This document shows positions 26,052-58,287 of a DNA stretch of 64,000 bases, piece after piece. The position numbers and the translations under genes are program-made. The notes beneath the pieces are model-generated. The model had not been told where the DNA came from, did no database searches, and was given only the letters and a program-made list of their open reading frames with translations. The stretch lies in sequence record MZ475897.1; one strand, 5' to 3'. Position 1 is the stretch's first letter. The number at the start of each line of letters is the position of its first letter.

Positions 26052-27815
26052 TTAGAATGCCTTACGTTCAACATTCGAATAATACGTTTCGTACGGCTCA
26101 GAATACAACTCAGGACCGCGCTGCGCACGCACAGTAACATAGCCTGTATGGCGATTCACTGCGGTGATTTCGATAGTAGGCTGTTTAGGCTTAATCGTGC
26201 CGTAGATAGGCGCGTTCATCGTTGGTGGGTCTGTCTGAATCTTGTTTACAGATTGCAGTGCAGCACCAGACAGCGTAGGGAACTTAAAGCGCAATTCAGC
26301 ACGCGTGCGCCCTGTAGCGATCTTGATACTACCCGCAGGCAGTTCAACGCCGCTCTGTTTCAAGTAAGCTGCGATGCGACGACCGATACCCGCCAATTGG
26401 TTCTTAGCGACAGGGTCCATCAGACCATCGAAACTAATAGCTGATTGCGGTTGATTCACTGACAGATGCATACCAGTGTTGAAGTAGCCTTCTGCGAGGA
26501 AGCGATACAACTGACGAACAATCTCAGGAGTGTTCTGTGCGATCACAGGTGTCAACAACTCAGGTGGGTTGGTCTTCATTGGGTCGCGGTATTCAACCTG
26601 ACCTTGCGAGTAACCCATGCTGATATGCTTAACACGAGGATAAGCAGACTGCAATGAACCAGTAGAGCGAATCAGGATAGAGCCAGACTTCGCTTGATCA
26701 TACAGTTCATCGCTGGTGGTTGTTGAGAACAGGAAGTAGTCGGTAGGCACAGCCATACGACCGATAGCTTCGATTGCTTTCGTCTGTACTTCTTTGATCG
26801 TCGAGCCGAACACTACACGACTGCGATTAGGCTGAGCGGTAGACACAGCAAAGAATGCACCGTACACCACCTTCTGGTCTTTGACGATAGGCGAAGCAGA
26901 CTTAACCTTTTGACCGCCTGGCAGTGGAGGTAGCTTAACGCCCACCAGCTTGCCTTTAGTGATTGCTTTGTTAGCAACAACAGGCTTCAAGGAAGACAGC
27001 AGCTTGTTCAACTCAGACCCGTCAAGAATCTTCTCCAGCGGAACAACGAGGTTCTGCGGCAGATAGTGTTTCTTGCGCAACGTATAGATAACGGTGTCTT
27101 TCTTGATCTGTAACGGAGTAGCCATGTTACGACCAGCTTGACCAACAGGCTGGAACGTATTCGCTTTGTCCTGACCAACAGAGCCGAACTCTTTGTCAAA
27201 CACAGACTGACCGATGATGTTCGCTGCACGCAGATGACCACGCACGTTGAACACAATCTTAGGTTCATCTTTCATGCGCAACTCATAGCGGTCACGCGTC
27301 AGATAGACCATACTGAACTTGTCGCCTTTCTCCAGCTCAAGGTCGTACTCATCGTTAGCGTCATCGATAACAACTTTCTTACCCTGATAGGTAGCGTACA
27401 CGCGAGCGGCAGCAGACTCCGAAGCAATCTTCAACGCTACGCCACAGTTAGACAGCGCGGTAGCATAGTTGGTTGCGTGGAACAGCGCGTCGTTCGATTC
27501 CGTGATAGCGACTTCTTTACCGCGTACGCCCAGCGCGAGGTGGATAGCGCTAGAGCTGGACATGAACACAGTGTGACCTGTATCTTCATGCTTACCAGCA
27601 AAGGACATACCACTAACACGCGACACAGACAGCGCATTCAGGTGCGGAGTAGTGAACGTATCACCCGCAGCAAAGTCAAAGATTTCACCTTGACGCCACG
27701 CGTAACCGATGTTGTTTGAACTCAAGCCAACAAACGCATCACCCACCTGTCGAATCGTAGTAGGGATAATGCTGAGATCGCGGACGATCTGATTTTGTTT
27801 CTGAATGATGGTCAT
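26052..27815 (-). CDS. Hypothetical basic protein with shared SH3-like module (putative head-internal protein)
   Basis: 587 aa; IASESAAA directly precedes the module at about 27200-27405. Confidence 0.65.
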   Translation of the reverse strand: MTIIQKQNQIVRDLSIIPTTIRQVGDAFVGLSSNNIGYAWRQGEIFDFAAGDTFTTPHLNALSVSRVSGMSFAGKHEDTGHTVFMSSSSAIHLALGVRGKEVAITESNDALFHATNYATALSNCGVALKIASESAAARVYATYQGKKVVIDDANDEYDLELEKGDKFSMVYLTRDRYELRMKDEPKIVFNVRGHLRAANIIGQSVFDKEFGSVGQDKANTFQPVGQAGRNMATPLQIKKDTVIYTLRKKHYLPQNLVVPLEKILDGSELNKLLSSLKPVVANKAITKGKLVGVKLPPLPGGQKVKSASPIVKDQKVVYGAFFAVSTAQPNRSRVVFGSTIKEVQTKAIEAIGRMAVPTDYFLFSTTTSDELYDQAKSGSILIRSTGSLQSAYPRVKHISMGYSQGQVEYRDPMKTNPPELLTPVIAQNTPEIVRQLYRFLAEGYFNTGMHLSVNQPQSAISFDGLMDPVAKNQLAGIGRRIAAYLKQSGVELPAGSIKIATGRTRAELRFKFPTLSGAALQSVNKIQTDPPTMNAPIYGTIKPKQPTIEITAVNRHTGYVTVRAQRGPELYSEPYETYYSNVERKAF

Positions 27816-27823
27816 ATTGATCC

Positions 27824-28258
27824 CTAATACGAAACAAGGCGGAAGGCATTCTTCTTGAGAAGATTCAAATTGCCTAACATGAGACTGTAGGCCATTGTGC
27901 CGTGCTCTTTAATAAGCTCGTCAGGCACAAGTGAACCGAAATAAATTGAGCGGTCTGGACGTGAGTTAATCTCAATGCCACTAGACTTCATTGCATTCGG
28001 TACGATGAAGCACCAAGGCTCTGCAACGTACTTACCTTTCACATACTGAACTCTATAGCCAACGGCAACGCGCTGGCCTTTCGGCGGGCTGTATGAAAAG
28101 ACATCCGTCTGCAATTCGAGGGCTTTCGATACGGAGAAAAGCGCCATAGTCAGAAAGCGTTGCTCGAATTGTGGAATGAATGCGTTGTCTTCGCATATCT
28201 TTTTCAGTACAGCCTCTTGCCGTGCTCGTGGGAACGAAGCGAAGAGGCTCAGGTTCAT
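27824..28258 (-). CDS. Hypothetical protein
   Basis: 144-aa ORF with ATGA coupling to tmk. Confidence 0.6.
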   Translation of the reverse strand: MNLSLFASFPRARQEAVLKKICEDNAFIPQFEQRFLTMALFSVSKALELQTDVFSYSPPKGQRVAVGYRVQYVKGKYVAEPWCFIVPNAMKSSGIEINSRPDRSIYFGSLVPDELIKEHGTMAYSLMLGNLNLLKKNAFRLVSY

Positions 28259-28869
28259 CCGAGACGCGCCAGAATTTGTCGAACAACCTCAGACACAGAT
28301 GCCGTTTCAGTATCGATAACAAGATCGAAACCACCAGGCACTTGCTTGTAGCGTTCGCTGTACTGCTCGAACACTTCTTTGGTCTGACGTTGTTCTATGC
28401 GGTCTTCACCACCAACGCGATGTTTACGGCGCTCTACCGAAGTCTCGTAAGAAACATTCAGCAGCACAGTAAGACGCTTCTCAGGTGCGAGCACTTCCCA
28501 CGTATGACGATAGATGCGATCATTGATATCCGAATCACCCGCTTGATAAACGAAGGTGGACGGGTAACCACGGTCAGCAATAATCATCGTGTTCGGTTCG
28601 TTAGCGAGAATACGCTCGTAGGAATTCATGGTCGATGAACGCGCGGCCAAGAACAGCAGCATTTCGGTGCGACTGTCCATATCTGTTGCGAGGCCGCCTC
28701 TGTCGTTAAGCAGAATATCACGCAGATGTTCTGACAAAGGAGTACCACCAGGCTCGCGCAGTCTCAGGACCTGAGAACCACGTTGTTGCAAAATTTCGGA
28801 GATTGCTGTGCAAACTGTAGATTTGCCAGAACCTTCGGGACCTTCTACTAAAAGATAAACAGAGTTCAT
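28255..28869 (-). CDS. tmk: Thymidylate kinase
   Basis: P-loop EGPEGSGKST, LREPGGT, ADR..S...YQ. Confidence 0.92.
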   Translation of the reverse strand: MNSVYLLVEGPEGSGKSTVCTAISEILQQRGSQVLRLREPGGTPLSEHLRDILLNDRGGLATDMDSRTEMLLFLAARSSTMNSYERILANEPNTMIIADRGYPSTFVYQAGDSDINDRIYRHTWEVLAPEKRLTVLLNVSYETSVERRKHRVGGEDRIEQRQTKEVFEQYSERYKQVPGGFDLVIDTETASVSEVVRQILARLG

Positions 28870-28878
28870 AGGGATTCC

Positions 28879-29370
28879 TTAGGCAAATCGCCCACCACGC
28901 CATGCGGCCTTGATGAGCAACTTAGCCACGATTTCGTTCTTCATTGTCTTTCGCTTCGCATTGCTACGGACAAATGCAGAGCCGAACTTATTCACGACAA
29001 TCAAACCAACACCGCTCACGCGTATGCGTTCGATTATTCTATCGCCGTGAGATTCAAACAGAGCCTCGTCTATGGCAAAGTACATACGCATACAAAACGG
29101 TAGATACTTGTGCCACTTCTTATCGGTATTGAAATCGGCCCAGCAACTCTTAACCTCAGTGATAATCATATCGCATTTGGTATTAAGGCAGAACACGTCT
29201 GCTCTTAGGTTGCCGTGCTTAATCAAACCCAGCTCAACATGACAGGAATAACGTTTGTCAATCCAATAACGCTGAGCTGCCTCAGTGATAAACATAGTCC
29301 TATCAGGACGACTCATTGAGGTAAAGACTGCCTGTGTTTGACGTTCAGCTTTGCGGCGCTTAAAGGCCAT
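28879..29370 (-). CDS. MmcB-like PD-(D/E)XK nuclease-fold protein
   Basis: LRADV...ITEVKSCWADFNTDKKWHKYLPFC..MYFA. Confidence 0.8.
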   Translation of the reverse strand: MAFKRRKAERQTQAVFTSMSRPDRTMFITEAAQRYWIDKRYSCHVELGLIKHGNLRADVFCLNTKCDMIITEVKSCWADFNTDKKWHKYLPFCMRMYFAIDEALFESHGDRIIERIRVSGVGLIVVNKFGSAFVRSNAKRKTMKNEIVAKLLIKAAWRGGRFA

Positions 29371-29815
29371 ACGAGTCGATAATGTCCAGCGCCTGAGCTA
29401 AAATTGGGCGGAGTTTCTTGTCCACCTTCTTTAGAGCTTTATCAGCACTGAACCACTTACGCTCACGCATGCCTGCTTCATCGTATTCAGTCAGTTCCTG
29501 CTTGACCTTCATGATGAACCATTCAACGTTCTGGGCGCGGCCGGTCTTGCCTTTAACATACTTCATAATGTCGATGAAGTCTTTAGGCTTACCGAGAATG
29601 CCGCCTTCTTCCATGGCTTCTTTAAGTGCGGAATCCAGTGGCGTCATACCTTTCTCAACGCCACCTTTAGGGAATCCCCAATTGTTTCCGTGTGTGGTGC
29701 GAATCAACAAGATCTGCACTTCACCTTTTTTCTTTTTGTATGGGACAACGCCTGACTGCTTACGCGCTTTCTTTTCAGAAGGCAGCTTAGCAGAGAGTGA
29801 CACATTCAGCATCAT
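29360..29815 (-). CDS. Nudix hydrolase
   Basis: WGFPKGG followed by the Nudix box variant GGVEKGMTPLDSALKEAMEEGGI. Confidence 0.9.
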   Translation of the reverse strand: MMLNVSLSAKLPSEKKARKQSGVVPYKKKKGEVQILLIRTTHGNNWGFPKGGVEKGMTPLDSALKEAMEEGGILGKPKDFIDIMKYVKGKTGRAQNVEWFIMKVKQELTEYDEAGMRERKWFSADKALKKVDKKLRPILAQALDIIDSYGL

Positions 29816-30312
29816 AGATAATCACTTCCACGAGGCATGTTCACTTCCCAGCGACCAGAGTTGTCTACCCACAGACCATTATCCTGCAGGCGCTTGTATG
29901 CATCATACAGAGAGCATGAGGCGAGCACTTGCAGTTCGGTACCGAAGTCCGACATTGAATAGCTGTAGATAGATTCAGGCAGGTACGACAGGCGCTGGCC
30001 TTCATACGAGTCGTGAACAATACAGCCATCAGCATCAGTAACAACAGCGTGAGATGCAACGAGGGTAGGCCCCAGAACAACGATACGATAGTCTGGGTGC
30101 TTGTTGTAGTTGCGCTGAATGAACAACGCAGCTTCTGCAAACGGACGTGCGACTTGCGCAGCGCGTGTGCAGTTTTGCTCAAACGCAGATTCAGACAAAG
30201 AGCGTGCACCAGTCAAATTCATGGCCGATGCAAAAATCATTGTTGTCAGATCGTTTGGTGCGATAGCTGTGGGGAAGAACTTCGTGCCCCACGCTTGATC
30301 TAAAGAAAGCAT
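29812..30312 (-). CDS. Hypothetical protein
   Basis: 166-aa ORF, ATGA-coupled to the Nudix gene, SD present. Confidence 0.6.
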   Translation of the reverse strand: MLSLDQAWGTKFFPTAIAPNDLTTMIFASAMNLTGARSLSESAFEQNCTRAAQVARPFAEAALFIQRNYNKHPDYRIVVLGPTLVASHAVVTDADGCIVHDSYEGQRLSYLPESIYSYSMSDFGTELQVLASCSLYDAYKRLQDNGLWVDNSGRWEVNMPRGSDYL

Positions 30313-30342
30313 GGACCGTCTCCTTATTCGATAGTCTAAACT

Positions 30343-30350
30343 AAATTAGC
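30343..30350 (-). promoter_or_regulatory. GCTAATTT motif, candidate phage late promoter
   Basis: Intergenic, 30 nt upstream of ATG 30312. Confidence 0.55.
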
Positions 30351-30351
30351 G

Positions 30352-30642
30352 TTAATCAGCAGGACAGATAAGGACTTGTCTGCGATTCTGCATAAAAGAC
30401 TTTGGAGCAGGGCCACCTATCACGATAGCGTATTTTAACAGGAAGCCGGGCTTCTTTGTCGCTACGTTACAGCCACCGTGTGAAAGAGCTGCTAGTGCTT
30501 GACTGCGAAAAGGACCGGTCAAGCACAGCGTATGAGCGAAGAAGGGTTTGCTCACCTTCTTCATTGTTCTGCTCATCAGAGCGCGGATAGCTTCGCATTG
30601 TTCCGCAGTAGGGTCAGCACCGCAATAAACATCGAAATGCAT
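30352..30642 (-). CDS. Hypothetical protein
   Basis: 96-aa ORF coupled by a TAATG overlap. Confidence 0.5.
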   Translation of the reverse strand: MHFDVYCGADPTAEQCEAIRALMSRTMKKVSKPFFAHTLCLTGPFRSQALAALSHGGCNVATKKPGFLLKYAIVIGGPAPKSFMQNRRQVLICPAD

Positions 30643-31343: not shown

Positions 31344-31353
31344 TGTCTTTCCT

Positions 31354-34037: not shown

Positions 34038-34040
34038 ATT

Positions 34041-34253: not shown

Positions 34254-34255
34254 GG

Positions 34256-35663: not shown

Positions 35664-35674
35664 AGATAGTCCTC

Positions 35675-40484: not shown

Positions 40485-41162
40485 TCAGTCCTCTACAATA
40501 ATAAGCACAGGTCTAACAGCATCATCGAACTTGATGAACGCAGCGCCAACAAGATAGCCACCCTTCTCTACTTGTTTCACGACGGCCTTTTCAAGATCTG
40601 TTTCCCACTTATCGCGCTGTGCGGGTTTGTAAGAAGCAAACGTCTCAGAAGCATCGTAGTAGTTATAGGTACCACCAGTAGGCATTGGGATACGTGCAAG
40701 GAACTCTAAGCGACTACAGTTCTTGAACGGGGTCTTGCGCAGCTCTTGCGTCAGCTTGGTGTTCTCTGATTTAGAGCCAGGCACAGCGGTGAATACTTTC
40801 TTAGGCTGAGGCTCACGAGGAGCAGCAGGCATCTTCTCACGCGCTGGCGTATTCTTGTCGCTGGCTTTCTTAACACGAATACCAGAAACAGTCCCTGTGA
40901 ATGGACGACTGCGACCAAGCAACGAACGTGCGGCCGTAGCGTCAACAACAAACACAACAGACGGGTCATCACGGTGCAGCACATAGAACTTGTTACGTGC
41001 AGCGGCCTTGATACCGAATACGTCTTTGTCCTCAATATCCGCTTCGTGTTCTTTGTTCTCGATACTGACCTTGCGCTTACCTTCAAAGCGATACCAGTCG
41101 CAGTCATTGATAGACACGATAGGTGTTTTGCGTGAAGCACTCTCGCTCAGAAAAATAAGCAT
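40485..41162 (-). CDS. Protein with LSESAS N-terminus and shared SH3-like module
   Basis: 225 aa; module at about 40900-41100; Pro/Lys linker. Confidence 0.65.
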   Translation of the reverse strand: MLIFLSESASRKTPIVSINDCDWYRFEGKRKVSIENKEHEADIEDKDVFGIKAAARNKFYVLHRDDPSVVFVVDATAARSLLGRSRPFTGTVSGIRVKKASDKNTPAREKMPAAPREPQPKKVFTAVPGSKSENTKLTQELRKTPFKNCSRLEFLARIPMPTGGTYNYYDASETFASYKPAQRDKWETDLEKAVVKQVEKGGYLVGAAFIKFDDAVRPVLIIVED

Positions 41163-45016: not shown

Positions 45017-46117
45017 TTATCCACGAACCGCTTTTGCGACTGAACGCACGTTCGCCAGAGTGAAGGAGAAGGTGCTTGACAGCAACCAGCCGCGGTCAGT
45101 GTTACCCTGGTTAGCGCCAGAGGTAGGAGTAGACTGCGTACCGCCACGAGTGGTGTACACTGCATGGTAGTCCTGGTCAGCCAGAACATACAGCTCGCCC
45201 TGTTTCAGAACGATGTGCTCTGGAGCACGCATACCATCGGTAACCAGTTCCATACCCAGCAGGGTACCCAGACGACCGGTGATCAGCAAATCATACTTAG
45301 ACACTGGGTCCAGAGCAGAAGAGAACTGATCGTTACCGATAATGTCGTTCCAGTAGTCCCACGCCATCACGGCGGTAGAGGTCGGCAGCGGCCATGAAGC
45401 AACGCTGTTTTTCAGGGTAGACAGCAGACGCGGAGTCAGGTCGCCGTGAACGTAGGTGATTGGGTTAGCGATACCAACAGCTTCGTCACACGCTTGTTTC
45501 CACAGACGGTCTTCTGCAACCATGATAGAAGACAGGCCATCTTGCTGCGCACGGTCCAGCAGGTCGCCGTTGATCTGGTCCAGATCCATTTTGCTTACGC
45601 GGATGTTGGATTTCAGTTCGAACTCAGCCGGCTGGTAGGTACGGCCGCGGAACTGGCGGTAACCGAAATCGGTAGGACCAGTTGCGATGATTGCTTCTGC
45701 CTGGTGAATTTTCAGTTCGATACGAGCAATGTCGCCCTGACGAACGGTAGCACCCTTACAGACTTTACGCAGCAGACCAGCACGCTCAGCACGGTCTTCG
45801 ATAGATGCAACGATAGAAGCACCCAGCGAGTCCCACTTAGCGCCAGAGGTATCAGCAGCAGCTTCGGCAAACAGTTCAATCTTCTCAGCTTCTGACAGAC
45901 CGTTAGAAGCGTTAGACTGTGAATGAACCAGCTCACCATTTTGGAACGCGTTAGCCAGACGGCTGATCTGAGAGATCAGGTCTTTCTGGCTTGATGCGTT
46001 AATCTCACCAGTGCTTTGGCTCAGAGCTAATTCATTGCTCTTGCCGAAACGCAGGTCTTCAATCGGGGCGCCATTACGCAGAGTTACTTTCGCGCCGCGC
46101 ATTAAGGAATTAGTCAT
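45017..46117 (-). CDS. Major capsid protein (HK97 fold)
   Basis: 366 aa, strongly biased codons, GGAG SD; EDRLWKQA, GRLGTLLGMELVTD; follows scaffold and decoration genes. Confidence 0.85.
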   Translation of the reverse strand: MTNSLMRGAKVTLRNGAPIEDLRFGKSNELALSQSTGEINASSQKDLISQISRLANAFQNGELVHSQSNASNGLSEAEKIELFAEAAADTSGAKWDSLGASIVASIEDRAERAGLLRKVCKGATVRQGDIARIELKIHQAEAIIATGPTDFGYRQFRGRTYQPAEFELKSNIRVSKMDLDQINGDLLDRAQQDGLSSIMVAEDRLWKQACDEAVGIANPITYVHGDLTPRLLSTLKNSVASWPLPTSTAVMAWDYWNDIIGNDQFSSALDPVSKYDLLITGRLGTLLGMELVTDGMRAPEHIVLKQGELYVLADQDYHAVYTTRGGTQSTPTSGANQGNTDRGWLLSSTFSFTLANVRSVAKAVRG

Positions 46118-46938: not shown

Positions 46939-49029
46939 TTATGAGCAGCGCAGACGGGCCAGTTTATCTTCGAACGAGTCAGTGGAAGCTGAACTCTGTG
47001 ATTGAATAGGTGCACTATCTTCGTCACCCAGAAGCTGCGCTGCAACGCTTGGTTGCTGCGGCTTAACAGGTGCGGTGACCTGCTGTTGAACTACAGGCTG
47101 AGCCTGCTGCACGGTACCGGCTGCGGCTTCGATTGACTGTGCAACTTCGTTCTGTGCAGTTTCAGACATAGACATAAGAGTCTGTGCTTTTGCCAGAGAA
47201 GTTGTCAGGAAATCTTTTCCATGCGCGATAAACGCGTTTTGAATCAGCGCGTTCGGGTCTTTGATGCCTGCGGCAGACAGAGAGCGAACGAGAGAATCAA
47301 CTATCGGGTTACGCACTTCACCCCAGTAGTTTTTGGTGATACCCAGCTGAGCAGAAGACAGGGCAGCAATCAAACGTTCCTGATGGGAAGCAACAGTGTC
47401 GTTGATGGTAGACGATACGCTGGTAGTGGCTTCGTTGATGCGAGCATCAGATTCAGCAACCAGCAACTTGTCTACAGGCATTTCGATTTGATACGGCATA
47501 AAGCCATACGCTTCGACTGTACCTACAACACCGCTTTGAACCAGGCTGTGTGAAACGGCACGGATGAAATTATCAGTTGCGAAAGATTTACGCGCAACTT
47601 CTTCACCAACAACGTTAGACACAGAGTTGAACGTGGCGCGAGCAACTGGCTGGCCGTCGTAGTACATGTGTACCGATTCGACTTTACCGCCGTTAGAACG
47701 GCTGAGGCTTACCAGGGTCGGGTCCAGTTCGCCGTACTGAGCTTGTACGGTAGACAGGCTGTCGAAGGTGCGATTAACGACTTTAGATTCAGAATCGAAG
47801 TCTTCATCGTCGAGGTCGAGATCATCTTCTTCCAGATCTTCGTCCTCGTCGAGGTCTTCGTCCTCGTCGAGGTCTTCGTCTTCATCAGCGCCAGACTCAG
47901 AATCGAAATCTTCGTCTTCGTCTTCGTCGTCGAGGTCCAGATCGTCTTCATCCAGACCTTCGTCGTCGTCGCCTGCACCAGATTCGGAGTCGAAGTCTTC
48001 GTCATCTTCGAGGTCTTCCTCGTCTTCGTCGTCCAGATCATCTTCATCCAGATCTTCGTTGTCGAGGTCATCCTCTTCGTCTTCCTCTTCCTCTTCGTCT
48101 TCGTCGAAGTCATCTTCATCGAAGTCGTCTTCATCTTCATCACCATCAGATGATTCAGAATCAAAGTCGTCGTCAGAATCTTCGTCTTCGTCGTCGAGGT
48201 CCAGATCGTCTTCGTCCAGGATATCAATGTCGCTGTCGCTATCATCGTCACCGGAGTTAGATTCAATCGGCTCGTCGACCAGCGCCGCAGAGCAATGCGC
48301 ACAGAAGACAGGCTCTTCATCGGAGCTTACAGTAAACGGCTGTTCGCATTTAGCGGAGCAGCTATAGATGTGAGCTTCGACGGTACCGTCAGCGGCAGCA
48401 GAAGACAGAGCAGTAACAGCTTCAGGAGCGTCCTGAGCATCACAGCTATCAACAGCCTGGCCGGTGTACGGGTCGAATTTGGCAACAGTAGCAGCGTTGA
48501 AGCTACCAGTGTTGGACAGCGCTGTGAACGTTTGAGCACCAGACAGGGCCTGCGCGAAGTTGCGTTGAGCTTCTTCGGCAGTCTCGCCAGTAGCGATCAG
48601 GCTCGCGTGTTCAATCTGTTCATCAGCGTTTGCGCTCTCAGCAAGGAACTGTGATACGCGTTCATCAGTGATTTCTGACAGGTCAGCAGAGCACGACGGG
48701 CAGCAGCCCTGAACGAGCGAAGCACTGTCGCTGATAACGTGGCTACCACAACCATCCAGACAGATAGTGTAATGCGCCTTCACGTCACCAGCAGAAGACT
48801 GAGACTGAACTTCGGCTTTCTCAACCAAATCAGGATGCTCATCCAGCAGTTCGTTACCGCCGGTTGGGTTGTAGAGGTCAGCGCCACTTTGCGAAGCAAA
48901 GCCCACACCGTCAGAAGAACCATAAATCATTAAGTTCTGGCCTAACGCAGTGCGACGAAAGTTCTCTACTGCCTGATTATGGTTTTTACCGACACACAGG
49001 ATACCCGCGAGTTGGGTAATCTTTGGCAT
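46939..49029 (-). CDS. Prohead scaffold or core protein with CxxC motifs and a ~155-aa Asp/Glu tract
   Basis: C..C pairs, acidic tract at about 47790-48260; GAGG SD supports ATG 49029. Confidence 0.65.
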   Translation of the reverse strand: MPKITQLAGILCVGKNHNQAVENFRRTALGQNLMIYGSSDGVGFASQSGADLYNPTGGNELLDEHPDLVEKAEVQSQSSAGDVKAHYTICLDGCGSHVISDSASLVQGCCPSCSADLSEITDERVSQFLAESANADEQIEHASLIATGETAEEAQRNFAQALSGAQTFTALSNTGSFNAATVAKFDPYTGQAVDSCDAQDAPEAVTALSSAAADGTVEAHIYSCSAKCEQPFTVSSDEEPVFCAHCSAALVDEPIESNSGDDDSDSDIDILDEDDLDLDDEDEDSDDDFDSESSDGDEDEDDFDEDDFDEDEEEEEDEEDDLDNEDLDEDDLDDEDEEDLEDDEDFDSESGAGDDDEGLDEDDLDLDDEDEDEDFDSESGADEDEDLDEDEDLDEDEDLEEDDLDLDDEDFDSESKVVNRTFDSLSTVQAQYGELDPTLVSLSRSNGGKVESVHMYYDGQPVARATFNSVSNVVGEEVARKSFATDNFIRAVSHSLVQSGVVGTVEAYGFMPYQIEMPVDKLLVAESDARINEATTSVSSTINDTVASHQERLIAALSSAQLGITKNYWGEVRNPIVDSLVRSLSAAGIKDPNALIQNAFIAHGKDFLTTSLAKAQTLMSMSETAQNEVAQSIEAAAGTVQQAQPVVQQQVTAPVKPQQPSVAAQLLGDEDSAPIQSQSSASTDSFEDKLARLRCS
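47790..48260 (-). repeat. Low-complexity acidic tract with (D/E)DLD(E/L) and FDSES repeats
   Basis: TCGTCTTC-rich DNA; four FDSES copies. Confidence 0.9.
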
Positions 49030-49074
49030 GGTTAAAACCCTCATAAGGAATGAAGTCGTTGAATCGACAGGTTG

Positions 49075-49082
49075 AAATTAAC
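49075..49082 (-). promoter_or_regulatory. GTTAATTT, one-mismatch variant of the late motif
   Basis: Intergenic, 45 nt upstream of the scaffold ATG. Confidence 0.4.
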
Positions 49083-49107
49083 GAAAGCAGAAAAATTTAA
49101 GGTATTT

Positions 49108-50238
49108 TTAGACTTTTCTGCTATCAATATCTGACTGAGGAATATAGCGATTTTCGAAGTATTTATTCACTACTTCGACACCGTTTAGCGTATAAACGTT
49201 ACGCAAACTATCTCCCCATACCATTAGTTCTGCCAGCGTTGCAAAGTGCTCCGTAGGCACGGATTTAATGGTCAGTGCATTGTTCGAATCAGGATGGATT
49301 CGCTTACCACGAATGGCCTGATCAAACTTCATACGGTCTACGTTACGTAGCATAGTATGGTCCACAAAGTGAGCCAATTCATGCGTCATAACGTGGGCCA
49401 TACTTTTGCTGTTATATCCACCCAGCAGACGAACAAGCTGTTGTGGACTAATAGCGATAACACCGTACATAAAGCCACGAATCATGTACGTGCTAATGTG
49501 AGAACCGCCTACATCGTTACCTTCCTGACCACCCAGAATAGAAACGTACAGACGCTTAAACGGCAGATTAACGTTCAGCCCTACAGCAGGCATTACGTTG
49601 TCCTGGATATCCTTTAGCACGAATGCTGGTGGGCTAACACCGTTGACTGAGATGTTTAGGCCAGGGATATTCAGTTCATCTGCACCACGCACTTCGAGAT
49701 GTACCGTACCACATTTAGGCAGTGGTTGAATTGCGTAGTTGTTTGGCGTACCACCAGCATAAGCAATATCAGAGTATTGCAGAGGCGTGAATTTACCGAA
49801 CTGAGGCCTGTCAAGTTCTCGACGTTGACGCGCTTCTTTGGACGCACGATCATCATCGATAGGAGTATCAACAGGAGGTTTTGGCTCGGGTTCAGGCGGT
49901 GGGATTGGCACTTCGGCAGCGGCAGGTTTTGGAACTTTCGCAGGCTTAGGCACTTTGACAGGCTTAGGCTTAGCAGACTTCTCCTCGTACGGAGTAAAGT
50001 CAAAGCCATCAAACAACGCATCAGGCTGAGCAGCAAAAGGTCTGCTATTAGCCAGTATCATTCCAGCGCTCTCCCCGCTGATTGCAACAGCTTGAGGGTA
50101 CTTAGGGTGAGCGATGTAATAGAGGTCATCGTTAACTTGATGGAGACCTACGACCTCGCGCGGCTGCATACGCACACCATTTGAAATCATAGTATCTCCA
50201 CCTAAGTAACGGACGAATTTGTAGTCCGTTATATCCAT
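49108..50238 (-). CDS. SH3-like module, Pro/Lys linker and HExxH zinc-metallopeptidase-like domain
   Basis: THELAHFVDH plus downstream EHFATLAE; start at ATG 50238 by TAATG coupling. Confidence 0.7.
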   Translation of the reverse strand: MDITDYKFVRYLGGDTMISNGVRMQPREVVGLHQVNDDLYYIAHPKYPQAVAISGESAGMILANSRPFAAQPDALFDGFDFTPYEEKSAKPKPVKVPKPAKVPKPAAAEVPIPPPEPEPKPPVDTPIDDDRASKEARQRRELDRPQFGKFTPLQYSDIAYAGGTPNNYAIQPLPKCGTVHLEVRGADELNIPGLNISVNGVSPPAFVLKDIQDNVMPAVGLNVNLPFKRLYVSILGGQEGNDVGGSHISTYMIRGFMYGVIAISPQQLVRLLGGYNSKSMAHVMTHELAHFVDHTMLRNVDRMKFDQAIRGKRIHPDSNNALTIKSVPTEHFATLAELMVWGDSLRNVYTLNGVEVVNKYFENRYIPQSDIDSRKV

Positions 50239-51017
50239 TAACGCATCCGCAGCAGGTGTTCTTTGTACGTTGCAGCACAAGCAAACGCTGGGTCATCCAC
50301 AGAGCTACACTCGAAACCAGTGAGACCCTTACAGTCACGATACACCAGGCGGCCTGTACGTGCATCCAAATACGTAGGCTTGTTGAACGCTGTGTGCGAA
50401 CAGAAGTTACGATTCTTCGGCGTTACCATCTGACCACAGATACTGCATTTATAAGCACGGTAGGTTGTGCCCTTGCTGTACGTGTTCAGTTCACCGCTGA
50501 GAATACGGTCACAACGTTCCTTACAGCGCGTGCGGTCAAACGCCAGCAACAGAGTCAGACGCGCATGATTGCCACGGAAGTTTTTCAGCTTAGACAGGTT
50601 TGAGTCAAAGATCATGCCCATTGCTTGGCGATAGTCTTTGTTGTTGTGCTCGATAAACGTCGGCTTACCAACGAACGTCTGATACGCAAGGCGTCCTTGA
50701 TCAGGGTTAAACGTCAACCATTCCTGTAAGCTGAATGCATCACCGTTAGTGTTCGGCAGCTCCGTGATGTTTACCACAACAGGCGCAATGATATAGTCAC
50801 GGATATCACGCGAGGTGTTGTACATCTCAGCAGCTTTAGGCAGCCACACGTTAACGTCGAGGTTAAAAGATCCCGTCTCAATACCGAAACGCGAAGCATC
50901 AACACGAATAGACTTAGCGTTTCGGCTAACATCTTCTTTGTGCATATCAATCGCGTTCAGTCCGACGAGGCCCATGTCTGAGGTATCAAACGACTCAGAC
51001 TTGATGAGCTGGGTCAT
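50238..51017 (-). CDS. Prohead maturation protease (herpes/HK97-type fold)
   Basis: PNTNGDAF, TFVGKPTFIEH, YSKG...CSICG...CSH, FECSSVDDPA; upstream of scaffold and capsid genes. Confidence 0.75.
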   Translation of the reverse strand: MTQLIKSESFDTSDMGLVGLNAIDMHKEDVSRNAKSIRVDASRFGIETGSFNLDVNVWLPKAAEMYNTSRDIRDYIIAPVVVNITELPNTNGDAFSLQEWLTFNPDQGRLAYQTFVGKPTFIEHNNKDYRQAMGMIFDSNLSKLKNFRGNHARLTLLLAFDRTRCKERCDRILSGELNTYSKGTTYRAYKCSICGQMVTPKNRNFCSHTAFNKPTYLDARTGRLVYRDCKGLTGFECSSVDDPAFACAATYKEHLLRMR

Positions 51018-51027
51018 CGTGTTCTCC

Positions 51028-51444: not shown

Positions 51445-51445
51445 G

Positions 51446-52300
51446 TTAACCTCGAAGTGCACCACGCGCCCAAGACTTAGCGAGAGCCAGAGTCATACGG
51501 CTAGGGTTCTGGAGTTTGACTTCACCCCGATGAACAGCAGTGAATGGTTCATTAGGGTTCTCGCTGCGTCCAGAACGATACGCAGATTCATTGAAGCCAT
51601 CAAACAAAGTAACCAGCCAGCCAGTTGACTTGTCCGAGCATTCGCCGCACTTGTTGTCCCAGCTAATCTTACCGCATGTACGGCCACCAGCATTGATAGC
51701 GTATGACACACGGTCTTTGTCTGAGTAAACGTCCTTAGCACGAATGGTCTTGAACGTCACACGAGACGAGGACTCGGAGCGTGGCATCATGCGTGCTTTA
51801 ATCGCTTCTGTATCAATAGAGGACCAGAATGATTCAAACAGCATACCCAGCTTCTGATCGATAGGCAGCTTGAGTCCATTGATTTGCGCAATGGTACTGG
51901 AGCTGTCATTGATAACGCGATTCAGGAAGTAGCCACCAATGATTATCGGCAGCTGTGTTCCCTGTGAGCCTACAGTGATACCAGATTGCTTGCAGTAGAT
52001 CTCAGACAGACCGATAGCAAGACGCGCAAGAACCTTGAACGTCTCTTTCTCTGTCGTGTTTGCGATTTCAGTATACAGACGCGCGGCAATATTCGGCACG
52101 ACTGTACGCTTGGCAACGCTGGCAATATCTTCGGCTGTGATAGTCTGACCAAGTTTCTTCTTGGCCGCTAACGCAAAGGCGTTATACAGGCTGGCTTTGT
52201 TCTCCGACGTCAGGGCCTCGTTCAGCTTGCTGATCGTCGTCTCCGCGCTGCTTTTCAGACTCGGAGTTTGAACTGTTTTGAGTCTCGCAACTTTCGGCAT
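51446..52300 (-). CDS. Hypothetical protein
   Basis: 284 aa with GGAG SD; overlaps the 3' end of the GT gene by 119 nt. Confidence 0.65.
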   Translation of the reverse strand: MPKVARLKTVQTPSLKSSAETTISKLNEALTSENKASLYNAFALAAKKKLGQTITAEDIASVAKRTVVPNIAARLYTEIANTTEKETFKVLARLAIGLSEIYCKQSGITVGSQGTQLPIIIGGYFLNRVINDSSSTIAQINGLKLPIDQKLGMLFESFWSSIDTEAIKARMMPRSESSSRVTFKTIRAKDVYSDKDRVSYAINAGGRTCGKISWDNKCGECSDKSTGWLVTLFDGFNESAYRSGRSENPNEPFTAVHRGEVKLQNPSRMTLALAKSWARGALRG

Positions 52301-53414
52301 TGGAGTTTTTCTCCTGGTTGAGGGCTTGCTTTGCTAAAATACCAAGCAGGCCAGAGGCTTTGATTTCTGTCTCAACGTCAAGCCCACGATGCAGACTGAG
52401 TTGAGCTAAATAGTTCAATGCAGGTTCGACCATATTAAGATTACGACAACCCCAATAGGCGCATTCGTAACATAAGTCTAAATTAACAGAGGTCTGGTCA
52501 AACAAGAAACTTTTTGGATTCTGTTGCGCAACAGACAGTCCCTGTATAGCCATGCCCACAGAGTTGATCATATCGTCACGGCGATAGAAAATATCAGACA
52601 GCATCGCGTAGCACTCAATACGATCAGAGCGGGCTGCAATAGCACGGTAGCAGCAGTTAACGGCTTCCTGAATAAAGCCCTGCTTGAACGTTGCTTTTGA
52701 CAGTTCCAGATTAGCCACAGCAACATAGTCAGACCACGTTGCGAGTTTGGTGAGACGTGCCACTTCGGCGCGTGCATCATCAAGCAGGTCAGCACGGTCA
52801 TAGTAAGCAACCGAATAGCACAGTTCACGCGCATAATAGAACGAGCAGCGCTGGTCACGAGGCCAATCGCCCGCATCACGCGCCAGCTCCATGAGATAAC
52901 CACGAGGCTTAGTGTGATCTGGGAAATGGTCAGTAGCGAACTCAGCACGCACAGTATGCGGTGGGTTACCTTCACGAATACGCATCAATACTTCATGCGC
53001 ACGGTAGCGCCACGTATACGCTCGGCTCTTGTATGCTTTCATCTGGTCATACTGGCTATCGCCGTTACGCATCAGAATCCAAACACCATCAGCCTGTTCA
53101 ATGTCAGGCATCTGACGTAACTTCTCAACCCAATCTGGATCGTCGAAGCGTTCATCAATGTCCAGCCAAACGATTAAATCATCTTCATGGAATGGCGCAG
53201 CGGCCAGGTCGCGACTAGCACCCAGATTGCGTTCTTCGGAGATGTCCGTAGAGTGATACAGCGCTGGGTGCGCGAACTCGGAAACAATCTGAGTCGTTGC
53301 ATCAATGCTGCCTGTGTCCACGATACTGATAGCATCAGCAGCAGACACATGCTTCAACCACTCGGCCATATTCTTTTCTTCATCACGGCAAATAGCCGCT
53401 ACGCAAATTCTCAT
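52182..53414 (-). CDS. Glycosyltransferase family 2 with TPR-like C-terminus
   Basis: ICRDEEK, IVDTGSIDAT, WLDIDE (DxD), YRAHE, YYARE; helical repeats. Confidence 0.88.
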   Translation of the reverse strand: MRICVAAICRDEEKNMAEWLKHVSAADAISIVDTGSIDATTQIVSEFAHPALYHSTDISEERNLGASRDLAAAPFHEDDLIVWLDIDERFDDPDWVEKLRQMPDIEQADGVWILMRNGDSQYDQMKAYKSRAYTWRYRAHEVLMRIREGNPPHTVRAEFATDHFPDHTKPRGYLMELARDAGDWPRDQRCSFYYARELCYSVAYYDRADLLDDARAEVARLTKLATWSDYVAVANLELSKATFKQGFIQEAVNCCYRAIAARSDRIECYAMLSDIFYRRDDMINSVGMAIQGLSVAQQNPKSFLFDQTSVNLDLCYECAYWGCRNLNMVEPALNYLAQLSLHRGLDVETEIKASGLLGILAKQALNQEKNSNAESCETQNSSNSESEKQRGDDDQQAERGPDVGEQSQPV

Positions 53415-53425
53415 GAGTGCCTCTT

Positions 53426-54328: not shown

Positions 54329-54330
54329 AG

Positions 54331-56301
54331 TCACTCCAACTTATATTTACGTCGGAACTCTGCTAGACCCATGACAGGAATGCCTTTGTCCATGGCCTTC
54401 TGGAGTTTCGCAGAACCCGAGCCTGGGTCTTTGGCGATAAGAATGGTTGTATCTGCTTTCATGCTATCTGAGGCAGTACCACCAAGCTCAACGATACGCT
54501 GCATCAGTTCACGATCACGAATGCCTGTGAATGCAACGTTAACGCCTTTCAGCTTAGAACTCTTCACCTGAACACGTTTCGGTGCAACCAGCTTAACACC
54601 GATTTCATTTGCAAGCTGATACGCAGAAACACACGCAAGAGCAATATCAGGCGATTTTGTTTTGATGCCGTGAATATCCGAGATAGCTTTAGCGAGCGCC
54701 AGAGGATTCTGTTTGCGCACTAGCTTGTCAAGGTCAGGCACGCTATCGACCACTTTATCAAACGTAGTGTTAGCGCCACGCATGAAGTAAGGCGAGCACG
54801 CTTTGAGCCACGTATTGACAGCAACGCCTGAGCGTAATGCTTTGAGGTCTTTCGCAAGCTGAGCGCCACGCGAGTCACCAACCACTTCACGCAGCACACC
54901 GATAGTTGCAGCGAACAAACGGGCAGGTGTATCAATGCCAGACTCTACGAGCAGCTTCGACGTACTCGGTCCTGTGTTAGCAACGTCCAATCCTTTGAGG
55001 AATGAACTGAGCAGTCGAGTAGTGCCTACCTCAGTCTTGGTATTGATAACGAACTCAACGCCATTGACTTTGTAAGGCACATCAGGCAGCTTTGGCTTCT
55101 TCGCAGGCTTGAGAATCTCCATGATGTATGGGATTACCTTACCGCTACGAATCAGCTTGACCGTAGCACCTGGGCCAAGAGGCTTCTTAGCATGAGGCGC
55201 AGTCGCTTTGCCTTTAGGCTTGAGGTAGCCGTGCTCAACATAGAATCCATTGTGACCATTAGCACGCTGCACAGTGACGCCACCAGTCATCAACGTTGGT
55301 GGGAAGATAACAACAGGCTGCAAGATACCGTACTTGGTTTCTTGATAGATAACATCCTCTACCTTAACGATCACTGTGTCAGCTTCTGCATTCATCTTAA
55401 ACTTGAATGCGTGCTTTGGATTGGATGCAGTCGCTTTAGGGCTGGGTACATCTTCCGTGAGTACAACACCATCCAGCTCGTAGATAGCTTTAGACAGACG
55501 GCGCTCCAAGAACGCGATCAACTCATCTTCTGAATTGAAGCGCTTTGGTGGCGTATGCCTAACGACTTCGAATCCCCAGCGCTCTAGCAGGGCGAACTGC
55601 TTAGACTGTTTGAGCGTAGCACCGTCACCGCCGATGATAGAGAAGCACACCATGCGGACGTACTTGAACTCGGACGCTGTTTCAAAGTTACGCACAAGTC
55701 CAGACGCAGCGTTACGCGCAGCCTTGAAGCGACCACCAGCAGACTCATGCATCTTAGCCATGAATGTCTTTTGAGGAATGAGTGCCTCGAAGCGCAACAC
55801 CGTCTGACCTCTGACTGGAATCTTTTTAGGGATTTTCATCGCAGGGATATGATGGGATACGTCTTTACCGTGAGTAGCATCACCACGGGTATAAGCCTTT
55901 ACAGGCACACCGTCTTGATACACAATCTCAAGGCTCAAGCCATCGAGCTTGTCGGTTGCAACGTAGTCCACATCTTTCGACAGTGCTTTGGCAATCTGCT
56001 TCGAGCCTGCCTGAAACTGATTGAGACTTGCCATAGGTACAGGCAGCTTAACATCAGCATCATCACGCTGACCAATCTTACGAGCCAGCTTCGACTTAGG
56101 CCATTTAGCGTCGATGTAGTTACGGATTGAATCGTACACTGCATCGCTCACCAGACCTTCATCATCCGTATGATATGCGTTGTCCAGAGCGGTTATTAAG
56201 TTACGCACTTGCGTCTGGTTCAAGGTGTCCAAGACCTTTTGAGGGTTCTTGGACAGTTGCTTGAGACTAACAGAGGCAGAAATAGAAAGCCTTACTTTCA
56301 T
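54331..56301 (-). CDS. ligA: NAD+-dependent DNA ligase
   Basis: Domain Ia (AYH...VSDAVYD), KLDG, TRGD, ARNAASG, LDGVV, AFKFK, OB fold, C-terminal BRCT. Confidence 0.92.
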   Translation of the reverse strand: MKVRLSISASVSLKQLSKNPQKVLDTLNQTQVRNLITALDNAYHTDDEGLVSDAVYDSIRNYIDAKWPKSKLARKIGQRDDADVKLPVPMASLNQFQAGSKQIAKALSKDVDYVATDKLDGLSLEIVYQDGVPVKAYTRGDATHGKDVSHHIPAMKIPKKIPVRGQTVLRFEALIPQKTFMAKMHESAGGRFKAARNAASGLVRNFETASEFKYVRMVCFSIIGGDGATLKQSKQFALLERWGFEVVRHTPPKRFNSEDELIAFLERRLSKAIYELDGVVLTEDVPSPKATASNPKHAFKFKMNAEADTVIVKVEDVIYQETKYGILQPVVIFPPTLMTGGVTVQRANGHNGFYVEHGYLKPKGKATAPHAKKPLGPGATVKLIRSGKVIPYIMEILKPAKKPKLPDVPYKVNGVEFVINTKTEVGTTRLLSSFLKGLDVANTGPSTSKLLVESGIDTPARLFAATIGVLREVVGDSRGAQLAKDLKALRSGVAVNTWLKACSPYFMRGANTTFDKVVDSVPDLDKLVRKQNPLALAKAISDIHGIKTKSPDIALACVSAYQLANEIGVKLVAPKRVQVKSSKLKGVNVAFTGIRDRELMQRIVELGGTASDSMKADTTILIAKDPGSGSAKLQKAMDKGIPVMGLAEFRRKYKLE

Positions 56302-56340
56302 GCTTTTCTCCGATCGACATTAACACTCTTGTTTACAGTG

Positions 56341-58287
56341 TTATGATGCGATAGGGTCCTTGTTGACCTCGTAATCTTCCGCCATGTCGTACACGCGATT
56401 GAACAGCTTAGGCGCCATATCTTTCACATGCTCGGCATAGTCAAACAGGTTCTGTTTACGCGCACGATTGACACGCACCTGACGTACTTCGTCTGGGCTA
56501 TTCGTAATGTCGTACAGCGTATACACAACGATGTTATCGGAGGAGTTATGAGTGCTTACCTTGAGGACTACCCAATCGCGTTGCAGTTTAGCATCAGCCT
56601 TGAAGCGGAGGACGTCACCTTCTTCGGCTTCATCTGCACGCGCATCAGGAGTAGACTTGTTAGTTGCGGCAATCTTCTTCGCAGTCTCGGCAGCTTCTTT
56701 CTCTGCCTCAGCCACATCAGAATCTTGGTCTTCATCCGCTTCTGTTTCGTCTACGGCGTCAGAGGTATCGTCATCGGAGTCGTCGTCTTCTTCGTCGTCA
56801 TCTCCAGACGTATCTTCCTCGTCATCTCCTCCGTCGTCGGCATCATCGGGGTCCACATCGGAGTCGTCATCTGAATCGTCGGAGCTATCATCCCCATCCT
56901 CATCATCAGACTCTGAATCGCTATCGTCAGCATCTTCTTCTGCATCTGGATCGTCCTCTTCCGTTTCGTCGTCTGGGTCAACGTCACCGCCTTCAGGGTC
57001 ATCCTCTTCCAGCTCGGAGTCGTCGTCGAGGCTATCCTCTTCTGAGTCGTCTGGCTCATCATCCTTGGTTGAGTTCTTAGCAGAGCCGCCTTTCTTGCGT
57101 ACCTTAGACTTAGGAGCAACTTCCTCTTCGTCATCATCTGGTTCATCAATGTCAGACAGGTCAAGCTCGGAATCGACTTCGTTGTCTGCGCTATCATCAC
57201 CGCCGAACATAGAACTAACGGTGTCCTCCAGGCTGAATACATCACCTGCAAACGGGCTACGTTGAAGAATGTCTTCAAGGCGTTGCTCATCTAGGTCCTG
57301 CTCAAGGTCCAGATGTTCTTCGATAGCATCCTCGAGGTTTTCATGCTCAATGACTTTAGGCAGACGACGACGATCATTCAGGCCAGGGTCATCAGAGTAG
57401 ATGGTACGCTGTGGTCCTGTAGGCGCTTCAATCTCACCGTCACGCACTTTGCGTCTGAGGTCACGCATCTCTGCGCTACGCTCACGCGCTTTCTTGCGTG
57501 CTTCCTGTGCGAGTTCCTTGCGCTGTTGTTTACGCTCAAGGGAAGATGCCTCACGACCTAAACGTTCAGCTTCCTCAAGTTCACGGCCTTCGCGATGGCG
57601 AGCGCGGCGAACCATACGACGATACTGTTTGATAGTATCAACATCAACACTACCAACAGGCCAGTCATTAAGAGGCAGAATGTTTGTGTCATGCACAATC
57701 AGATCGTACTGAGCATCATCAACTTTCAGGAACAGGCCTTCTGTGTTGATAACGATACCGCCTTTACCTTGACGCAAGAAACGCACGCCAATCATATCGT
57801 TGCGGTACATCTTATAAATACCCTTGGTAGTCTTCACAGGATATTCATTGCCGGGCACCATGCGCCATTGATAGTTGGCAAAGTCAACGCCGTACACAGC
57901 TTCTGACTTAACCGATTTCGGCATAAAGCGAGGAGCATCAAACAGGGTGCGATTGATCTTACGCTCAAGGCTCTTAGCGCCAGCAACGCGTGCAGTAGTA
58001 CCAGCCTCACGTTTAACCACAGCTGGTGGCTTACGCAACTTAGAGCTACGTTCAATGAGGAACAGACCTGTCGTTTTGTCGAGAGGGAAATCGACGTGCG
58101 GCATGTCTGGGAAAATCAGTGTATAACGACCACCATTCCTGAGTGGCAGAATACCAAAAGTGTCGCCATTACGAATCATACGTTTGTGTGATCGCTGCGT
58201 CACCTCTCGCCCACGTGAACCAGTAAACTGCATCCACGCGTACTTCGATACGGCATCTTCATATGATGCGGATTCGGAGAGTACCAT
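56341..58287 (-). CDS. Protein with LSESAS N-terminus, two SH3-like modules, charged coiled coil and long acidic tract
   Basis: 648 aa; acidic tract at about 56690-57210. Confidence 0.7.
   Translation of the reverse strand: MVLSESASYEDAVSKYAWMQFTGSRGREVTQRSHKRMIRNGDTFGILPLRNGGRYTLIFPDMPHVDFPLDKTTGLFLIERSSKLRKPPAVVKREAGTTARVAGAKSLERKINRTLFDAPRFMPKSVKSEAVYGVDFANYQWRMVPGNEYPVKTTKGIYKMYRNDMIGVRFLRQGKGGIVINTEGLFLKVDDAQYDLIVHDTNILPLNDWPVGSVDVDTIKQYRRMVRRARHREGRELEEAERLGREASSLERKQQRKELAQEARKKARERSAEMRDLRRKVRDGEIEAPTGPQRTIYSDDPGLNDRRRLPKVIEHENLEDAIEEHLDLEQDLDEQRLEDILQRSPFAGDVFSLEDTVSSMFGGDDSADNEVDSELDLSDIDEPDDDEEEVAPKSKVRKKGGSAKNSTKDDEPDDSEEDSLDDDSELEEDDPEGGDVDPDDETEEDDPDAEEDADDSDSESDDEDGDDSSDDSDDDSDVDPDDADDGGDDEEDTSGDDDEEDDDSDDDTSDAVDETEADEDQDSDVAEAEKEAAETAKKIAATNKSTPDARADEAEEGDVLRFKADAKLQRDWVVLKVSTHNSSDNIVVYTLYDITNSPDEVRQVRVNRARKQNLFDYAEHVKDMAPKLFNRVYDMAEDYEVNKDPIAS
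56690..57210 (-). repeat. Low-complexity Asp/Glu/Ser tract
   Basis: About 170 codons dominated by GAC/GAT/GAA. Confidence 0.9.

Follow-up and report, generated by a model that had tools for sequence, protein, structure and literature searches.

A conserved small-x-small peptide motif in head proteins and at enzyme N-termini of Erwinia jumbo phage pEa_SNUABM_21: a candidate prohead-protease site and capsid-targeting tag

The head module and the carriers of the S-x-S motif

The window analysed here, a 64-kb stretch of DNA, is identical to record positions 62001-126000 of the Erwinia jumbo phage pEa_SNUABM_21 (MZ475897.1, 265 kb), and its minus strand carries every one of its genes. Head proteins encoded in the window, among them the major capsid protein and the prohead maturation protease, share with several enzymes a short peptide motif, S-x-S, often followed by Ala. 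A first-pass annotation had proposed that S-x-S(-A) is the prohead-protease site of this phage group, and that a DNA ligase and a Nudix hydrolase bearing it at their N-termini are packaged in the head and injected with the DNA. The rest of the pEa_SNUABM_21 genome was added to the window and all N-termini were scanned. The relatives of this phage comprise Erwinia phages (Snuvirus, Alexandra, Y3 and Yoloswag groups), Dickeya phages JA11 and AD1, and Yersinia phage fHe-Yen9-02; Pseudomonas phages PaBG and Lu11 are more distant, as is phage NCTB. As a clade, PaBG, Lu11 and the Erwinia and Dickeya phages stand apart in phylogeny and belong to neither the phiKZ nor the T4 group (PMC7412058). Phage phiR1-37, considered as a relative with proteomic data, was dropped, as the Yersinia relative is fHe-Yen9-02.

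All of the motif strings quoted in the first-pass annotation, N-terminal and internal, were found where it had placed them (Table 1). Only one of the four N-termini agrees with its register, (L/I/V)-x-S-x-S-A; the actual register is phi-S-x-S-(A/T/F), where phi is a hydrophobic residue. Its comparison with the Glu-containing motifs of other phages was misleading, as the middle residue can be E, V, L, T, Q, A, H, K or I. The protein that it named as the scaffold is a 701-residue protein with the PHROGs label 'ATPase' and not the 240-residue protein adjoining the capsid gene.

Table 1. Features that carry the motif or bear on it. Coordinates count from the first letter of the window unless preceded by the record name MZ475897.1; aa, amino acids.
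Feature	Coordinates	Strand	Motif or domain	Remarks
Stretch of ~1.2 kb	24842..26052			Between upstream gene block and p587 gene
p587, KMPT-N protein, 587 aa	26052..27815	minus	IASESAAA, residues 130-137; A-S-E-S-A-A, residues 131-136, at 27408..27425; PF20294 residues 139-201	Internal site, six residues ahead of KMPT-N domain
Nudix hydrolase, 151 aa	29360..29815	minus	N-terminus MMLNVSLSAK; tag M-M-L-N-V-S-L-S-A at 29789..29815	Pfam NUDIX
166-aa protein	29812..30312	minus	LSESAF, residues 39-44	Probably no functional site
p225, KMPT-N protein, 225 aa	40485..41162	minus	N-terminus MLIFLSESAS; tag M-L-I-F-L-S-E-S-A at 41136..41162; PF20294 residues 21-85	
Major capsid protein, 366 aa	45017..46117	minus	LALSQST, residues 30-36	phrog_2522 major head protein, aligned from residue 27; RefSeq annotation of close relative
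Capsid site 2	45911..45925	minus	H-S-Q-S-N, residues 65-69 (S-x-S 66-68)	
Capsid site 1	46010..46024	minus	L-S-Q-S-T, residues 32-36 (S-x-S 33-35)	
701-aa acidic Ser-rich protein	46939..49044	minus	25% D+E; 22 S-x-S, including DFDSES (four copies), VQSQS, IESNS, IQSQS	Candidate scaffold/core protein
p390, KMPT-N protein, 376 aa	49108..50238	minus	PF20294 residues 6-65, E 2e-20	Untagged paralog
Prohead maturation protease, 259 aa	50238..51017	minus	N-terminus MTQLIKSESF	phrog_18299 'head maturation protease'
Cys/His cluster of protease	50394..50447		C191, C194, C206, H208 (residues 191-208)	Weak zinc-finger matches
Protease N-terminal site	50988..50999	minus	S-E-S-F, residues 7-10	Candidate autoprocessing site in flexible N-terminal tail
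beta-1,4-glycosyltransferase	52182..53414	minus		In head-gene block, between protease and ligase
NAD-dependent DNA ligase, 656 aa	54331..56301	minus	N-terminus MKVRLSISAS; tag M-K-V-R-L-S-I-S-A at 56275..56301	Pfam ligase domains
p648, KMPT-N protein, 648 aa	56341..58287	minus	N-terminus MVLSESAS; tag M-V-L-S-E-S-A-S at 58264..58287; PF20294 residues 16-81, E 3e-17	
1397-aa protein	58349..62542	minus	C-terminal MSCSA	
_00187, 266 aa	MZ475897.1 157193..157993	minus	Six conserved S-x-S	Beside head-tail connector gene
Three adjacent small genes	MZ475897.1 173941..175611	minus	N-termini M-E-L-x-(V/I)-S-L-S	One is Alt-like ADP-ribosyltransferase gene, as predicted from sequence
Second 'peptidase'	MZ475897.1 179332..180306	minus	phrog_17197; no Pfam match	Also in Yoloswag and JA11

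Three of the carriers (p648, p225 and p587) are related. They share the Pfam domain KMPT-N (PF20294) just after the motif, with scores of 62.9, 68.4 and 71.2 bits at a cut-off of 28.9, and with p390 (73.0 bits) they make up four paralogs in the window. Because they are paralogs with a common domain, the three carriers do not count as independent instances. In p390, no S-x-S precedes the KMPT-N domain in any relative. This untagged paralog, together with tags on unrelated folds, refutes the idea that S-x-S-A is part of the KMPT-N domain. The p648 tag reads LSESAS, LSVSAS, HSLSAT, LSQSAT or HSLSAS in relatives, and that of p225 retains S-x-S-A in all 32 ortholog clusters, with S6, S8 and A9 invariant and E, T, V, A or L in the middle. 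The internal site of p587 reads ASESAA, ASTSAA, ASMSAA or SSESAA, and the first ~130 residues of this protein may be a propeptide. The start of p390 was corrected to an ATG at 50238 that overlaps the stop codon of the protease gene, which suggests that the two are translationally coupled; the RefSeq annotation of pEa_SNUABM_7 starts the gene 22 codons later and truncates the KMPT-N domain.

Enrichment and conservation of the motif

The motif is enriched at N-termini. S.SA (the dot standing for any residue) starts within the first 12 residues of four window proteins, where 0.32 are expected, and none of 1000 shuffles reached four. Genome-wide, N-termini of the form M-x3-[VIL]-S-x-S number seven by automatic start calling and ten by hand, compared to 0.61 expected. 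The ten are p225, the ligase, the Nudix hydrolase, a 1944-residue SNF2 helicase (_00182), and _00199, _00207, _00208, _00209, _00242 and _00251; the motif occurs at slightly different offsets in p648, _00252, _00181, _00179, _00197 and _00198. Carriers span at least eight unrelated protein families. From these N-termini an 8-9-residue tag emerges with the consensus M-(E/K)-(L/I/M)-phi-(V/L/I)-S-(L)-S-(A). When each of the other 19 amino acids was placed at the two outer positions of X-x-X, at most one protein was found genome-wide, and the spacings SS and S..S gave none at the tag offset. The count was replicated in Yoloswag (10 compared to 1.0 expected) and in JA11 (10 compared to 1.1 expected). 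Plain S.S within the first 15 residues shows a modest excess, 52 compared to 37 expected, and was set aside as a statistic too weak alone; because it is only mildly enriched, the signal is that of the specific tag. Across the genome, 35 conserved S-x-S were found in 27,970 alignment columns, and of all conserved X-x-X types S-x-S leans most strongly towards the N-terminus, with 29% in the first 40 residues compared to 11% of alignment columns. The C-terminal MSCSA of the 1397-residue protein is not conserved and was therefore taken as chance.

Two further observations concern the tags. In JA11 there is an excess of M-x2-4-[VIL]-T-x-T N-termini (5 compared to 0.8 expected), and these may be Thr variants of the tag. 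The three adjacent small tagged genes of pEa_SNUABM_21 (Table 1) are clustered in a way that recalls the grouped internal-protein genes of T4.

Conservation acts on the peptide. Both Ser residues are invariant and the middle residue is variable in orthologs of p648, p225, p587, the capsid protein, the protease, _00207, _00251, _00252 and _00179, and no Glu is conserved beside the tags in the orthologs compared. Since the middle residue changes freely, Glu is not required, unlike in the motifs of T4, phiKZ and SPN3US. The Ser codons of the tags mix AGY and TCN, and this switching points to selection on the peptide and rules out a motif at the level of DNA or RNA. The conserved residues lie in disordered tails: in an AlphaFold2 (AF2) model of p225, residues 1-13 are disordered and the fold begins near residue 20, yet the tag residues are invariant, and the protease likewise keeps its motif in a tail modelled with low confidence.

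The hydroxyl group is dispensable as well. In PaBG, the KMPT-N protein begins MLMIAEAK and the _00207 ortholog MQLLIAMAS, with A-x-A in place of S-x-S, and several S-x-S columns of the 701-residue protein are also A-x-A. Because Ala can replace Ser at both positions, in these PaBG orthologs and in some homologs of the protease, a site of Ser phosphorylation or O-glycosylation was rejected. The same interchange argues that the motif is not a substrate of the beta-1,4-glycosyltransferase, whose gene keeps its place within the head-gene block in all relatives including PaBG. Protease S1 and S3 pockets that accept small side chains would be expected to produce just such an exchange of Ser, Ala and Cys at two alternate positions.

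The protease, its candidate substrates and the tagged enzymes

The protease gene is located in the head module. Sequence searches with its product returned no Pfam match and, in the PDB, only noise, so a fold search was needed. An AF2 model built on 40 homologs (predicted local distance difference test [pLDDT] score 85, predicted template modelling score 0.83) had a single significant match in the PDB, T4 gp21 (5JBL, probability 0.99), and a search of BFVD returned many HK97-type prohead proteases along with homologs in PaBG, phiRSL1 and phage G. The model thus supports assignment to the fold of the T4 gp21/HK97 prohead serine proteases. H124 and S181 are invariant in the alignment, and would suit a Ser-His catalytic pair. 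At the N-terminus, where residues 1-20 of the model have low pLDDT, S-x-S-F is kept in six relatives (SESF, SHSF, SKSF), and most of 69 homologs retain it even at about 40% identity; those that deviate have A-H-S-F, A-V-S-F, S-Q-C-F or C-Q-A-F. In T4 gp21, the enzyme's own motif ends at residue 9 (PMC9026906). The invariant Cys/His cluster at residues 191-208 may form a Zn-ribbon-like insert, which would be unusual among prohead proteases.

Two motifs are found in the N-terminal part of the capsid protein. At the first, L-S-x-S-T-G-E is invariant in seven lineages including PaBG, with Q, S, E or K in the middle; at the second, six lineages have HSQS, HSTS, HSES or VSES. Cleavage at the second site would shorten the protein by about 19%; in PaBG, where virion proteins are proteolytically processed, the capsid protein undergoes a mass loss of about 20% on maturation (PMC7412058).

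The 701-residue protein has 11 S-x-S sites that are conserved in six of seven relatives, and its sequence makes it a candidate scaffold or core protein that is cut into peptides. Its label as an ATPase (phrog_20988) seems doubtful. It also possesses conserved Cys pairs (CPSCS, YSCSA), and the DNA of its repeat region matches Asp-rich proteins of many actinophages, probably through low-complexity similarity. In the 266-residue _00187, the six conserved S-x-S compare with about 0.3 expected from the genome-wide rate, making it a candidate for a second scaffold or core protein.

Among the tagged enzymes, the ligase has its tag in eight of 26 ortholog clusters, which fall into two groups, SNU21-like and JA11-like. 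Tagged ligases are 656-657 residues long and continue after the tag with S-V-S-L-K-Q-L, at the place where close untagged orthologs (647-650 residues), most of them with the start MQISLKRL, begin. The tag is a lineage-specific module, 8-9 residues long, added to the protein, and taking it off would restore the untagged N-terminus. The Nudix tag, VSLSA[KR], is kept in Alexandra and Yoloswag. Many of the closest metagenomic Nudix relatives are tagged (MMINVSLSAK, MKLMISTSAR, MEISISG, MEISISK, MFISISK and, in the A-x-A form, MTKMTIALAAG), and in others the sequence begins with the catalytic core. The tagged _00208 matches phrog_832, 'RNA polymerase ADP-ribosylase', of the T4 Alt family (E 4e-13) and is predicted to be an Alt-like ADP-ribosyltransferase.

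The helicase _00182 provides the only direct link between a tag and a location in the virion. Its tag reads IISTSA, LISTSK or IFSTSA in Erwinia and Dickeya phages, and it corresponds to PaBG gp202, which begins MGSLFTLNSLSAA and has S-L-S-A at residues 9-12. PaBG gp202 is the 221-kDa band 1 of the PaBG virion (PMC7412058 Table 1). Packaging and injection of the ligase and the Nudix hydrolase are plausible by analogy. We rejected PaBG gp83 as a member of the MSLIKINL...SESAK family, as the likeness is confined to the N-terminus, BLAST finds no homology and the link is weak. The GenBank record of Y3 carries no mass spectrometry flags.

A probable prohead-protease site, a possible targeting tag and the alternatives

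These results lead us to regard the small-x-small motif as probably the site recognized by the prohead protease. That it also serves, in tags, to target cargo to the capsid, in the manner of T4 with a motif that does not depend on Glu, is the account we favor, with somewhat less assurance. The recognition motif would consist of two small residues (Ser, Ala, rarely Cys) around a free one, usually with a hydrophobic residue before and A, T, G or F after, and our guess is that the scissile bond would follow the second small residue. The protease would trim the N-terminal region of the capsid protein, cut the 701-residue protein and _00187 into short peptides, and probably process its own N-terminus. 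On the disordered N-termini of otherwise unrelated proteins, the motif would close a portable tag, M-(E/K)-phi-phi-(V/I/L)-S-x-S-(A), 8-9 residues in length, that brings its bearers into the prohead core, by analogy with T4, whose internal proteins have a capsid-targeting sequence and whose Alt protein has a propeptide. The tag would then be clipped and the remaining cargo ejected with the DNA, the putative cargo being KMPT-N proteins, the Alt-like ADP-ribosyltransferase, the 1944-residue SNF2 helicase, the Nudix hydrolase, several small proteins and, in the pEa_SNUABM_21 lineage, the NAD-dependent ligase. We put the chance that the tags load the Nudix hydrolase, the ADP-ribosyltransferase, the helicase and, in that lineage, the ligase into the capsid for injection at a little short of even. 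More tentative is the broadest version, in which a gp21-fold protease switched from Glu-directed cleavage to S-x-S/A-x-A, and a portable tag, M-E-phi-phi-V-S-L-S followed by the cut and A, loads at least ten changeable cargo proteins for co-injection, with lineages adding or dropping the tag; the Nudix hydrolase, the Alt-like ADP-ribosyltransferase and the SNF2 helicase of 220 kDa would be part of this cargo, joined in some lineages by the NAD-dependent DNA ligase.

Most of this would be familiar from T4, where a gp21-fold protease also acts on a short motif in the capsid propeptide, in core and scaffold proteins that are cut to peptides, and at its own N-terminus (PMC9026906). T4 internal proteins IPI-III carry a 10-residue capsid-targeting sequence and Alt a 7-residue propeptide (PMC9026906). 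There, as proposed here, N-terminal propeptides of 7-10 residues occur on non-structural cargo that includes an Alt-family ADP-ribosyltransferase, and cargo sets vary between relatives. Unlike the T4 motif, L/I-x-E with Glu at P1, the motif described here dispenses with Glu and holds two small residues (S/A) invariant. The tag M-E-phi-phi-V-S-L-S-A is unrelated in sequence to the T4 capsid-targeting sequence, and its cargo differs (Nudix, SNF2 helicase, NAD-dependent ligase and KMPT-N proteins), known here from sequence alone. The systems of phiKZ gp175, SPN3US gp245 and 201phi2-1 likewise belong to jumbo myoviruses, where N-terminal propeptides are removed from many proteins of the head and of ejection, frequently members of paralog families. 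Their short motif has a small residue at P3, with a preference in SPN3US for Val at P4 and Ser at P1'. However, the phiKZ and SPN3US motifs end in Glu (S/A/G-x-E and A-x-E, respectively), and propeptides in this group are mostly long, 20-254 residues, compared to the 8-9-residue tags here. Herpesvirus assemblin, which shares the fold family of phage prohead proteases, matures at sites of the form phi-x-A followed by S. Assemblin and signal peptidase I both follow small-residue cleavage rules with an upstream hydrophobic residue; this is a mechanistic analogy only, as there is no sequence relationship and the tags are not signal peptides. What is most likely new is therefore the small-x-small motif in place of phi-x-E, T4-like maturation and targeting being already known, and the literature we searched describes only Glu-ending motifs for gp21-type prohead proteases.

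Several observations weigh against the combination of protease site and targeting tag. Every characterised gp21-type protease of giant phages cuts after Glu (PMC9026906 and the SPN3US work), and a small-x-small specificity would be a departure from this. In the capsid protein, the first motif lies within a longer invariant block, L-S-x-S-T-G-E-I-N-A, whose Glu is also invariant, and a Glu-directed cut within this block is possible; at the second site, PaBG has no S-x-S, merely A-P-S-A nearby. The LSESAF of the 166-residue protein, which the first-pass annotation had counted as a copy, is unconserved (VIEQA in Yoloswag, IIEDA in JA11). On the enzymes, the tag is absent from 18 of the 26 ligase clusters and from the Nudix hydrolase of JA11, and is not universal in either enzyme. 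The original proposal of a cleavage site and propeptide otherwise receives strong support of an indirect kind: the conserved linear motif, its placement in head proteins and the Ser/Ala interchange sustain it, and the tags on the Alt-like ADP-ribosyltransferase and the SNF2 helicase extend it, with the role of Glu given up. The only virion proteome, that of PaBG with 14 Coomassie bands, contains no ligase, Nudix hydrolase or p648-type KMPT-N protein (PMC7412058); as these are 14 abundant bands, low-copy cargo would go undetected. A second phage 'peptidase' is encoded in the pEa_SNUABM_21 genome. In addition, the motif was defined after seeing the data, a concern that the controls lessen and do not remove. 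Our literature search found, for this clade, neither mature N-termini nor semi-tryptic peptides nor cleavage in vitro, and no paper that defines an S-x-S motif or uses the name KMPT-N; papers on PaBG and the Dickeya phages and overviews of jumbo phages neither define a cleavage motif nor discuss KMPT-N.

Some of these points would fit a narrower explanation, that S-x-S is the prohead-protease site in head proteins and the look-alike N-termini of enzymes do not target the capsid, the enzymes being unprocessed or processed in the cytoplasm (for activation or late turnover) and not injected. The missing Nudix hydrolase and ligase in the PaBG virion list and the lineage-specific ligase tag are what it would predict, a replication ligase is needed in the cytoplasm, and in SPN3US most head proteins are uncleaved, where motif matches alone are no proof of cleavage. 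We nevertheless consider it unlikely. The consensus that the enzyme tags share ahead of S-x-S, with its fixed offset, is longer than a mere cut site would require, and in this they resemble the T4 capsid-targeting sequence, whose upstream residues do the targeting (PMC9026906). Moreover, the helicase, the only tagged enzyme with proteomic data, was found in virions, and the tagged proteins include an Alt-family enzyme.

It is rather improbable that the motif is non-proteolytic, either a docking peptide for the scaffold, the portal, a chaperone or an AAA+ translocase, or a degron for a host protease. A conserved motif in a disordered tail is what a docking site typically looks like, giant phages have genes for candidate chaperones or translocases (PMC7824862), and we infer cleavage at the motif rather than observe it. 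Yet the 6 and 11 regularly spaced copies in the two scaffold-like proteins and the copy at the N-terminus of the protease fit fragmentation better, small side chains at two alternate positions are a classic signature of protease S1 and S3 pockets, and the processing of PaBG virion proteins is documented (PMC7412058).

That a different protease reads the motif seems to us more doubtful still. The second phage 'peptidase' is conserved in Yoloswag and JA11, and a host small-x-small enzyme could also be considered, as A-x-A-like rules are known for signal peptidases. The phage enzyme, however, is uncharacterised and has no Pfam match, and it is head-module proteins, the gp21-fold protease among them, in which the motif accumulates. 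Its bearers, such as the ligase, the helicase and the capsid protein, belong to the cytoplasm or the virion, and the tags lack the architecture of a signal peptide, with no basic n-region and with position 2 often acidic; a Sec signal peptide cleaved by signal peptidase I was rejected on these grounds and on a hydrophobic stretch of 3-4 residues, compared to a core of about 7-15. Chance, composition, paralogy or a DNA/RNA signal at gene starts could draw on the three KMPT-N paralogs, the commonness of Ser near N-termini, the modest excess of plain S.S and the unconserved LSESAF, but is very improbable given the shuffle and residue controls, the replicate genomes Yoloswag and JA11, the eight or more unrelated families, the untagged KMPT-N paralog and the codon switching.

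If the preferred reading of a small-x-small protease site and targeting tag is correct, it would supply a maturation-cleavage rule for an entire clade of jumbo phages that has received little study (PaBG, Lu11 and the Erwinia, Dickeya and Yersinia phages) and would mean that gp21-type proteases are not bound to Glu at P1. The injected proteome would become readable from sequence, including candidate anti-defence or takeover enzymes (Nudix hydrolase, ADP-ribosyltransferase, SNF2 helicase, ligase), and injected cargo would change by the gain or loss of nine codons. Like the capsid-targeting sequence of T4, the tag would also offer a very short means of loading large capsids with reporter proteins.

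Finally, the window contains no tRNAs, and the stretch of ~1.2 kb ahead of the p587 gene, with very short open reading frames only, may be regulatory. A 108-kb record named Salmonella phage Sen-NF (PV359490.1) contains a head module and a p648 homolog of the PaBG/Lu11-type jumbo-phage clade, and may be a partial genome.

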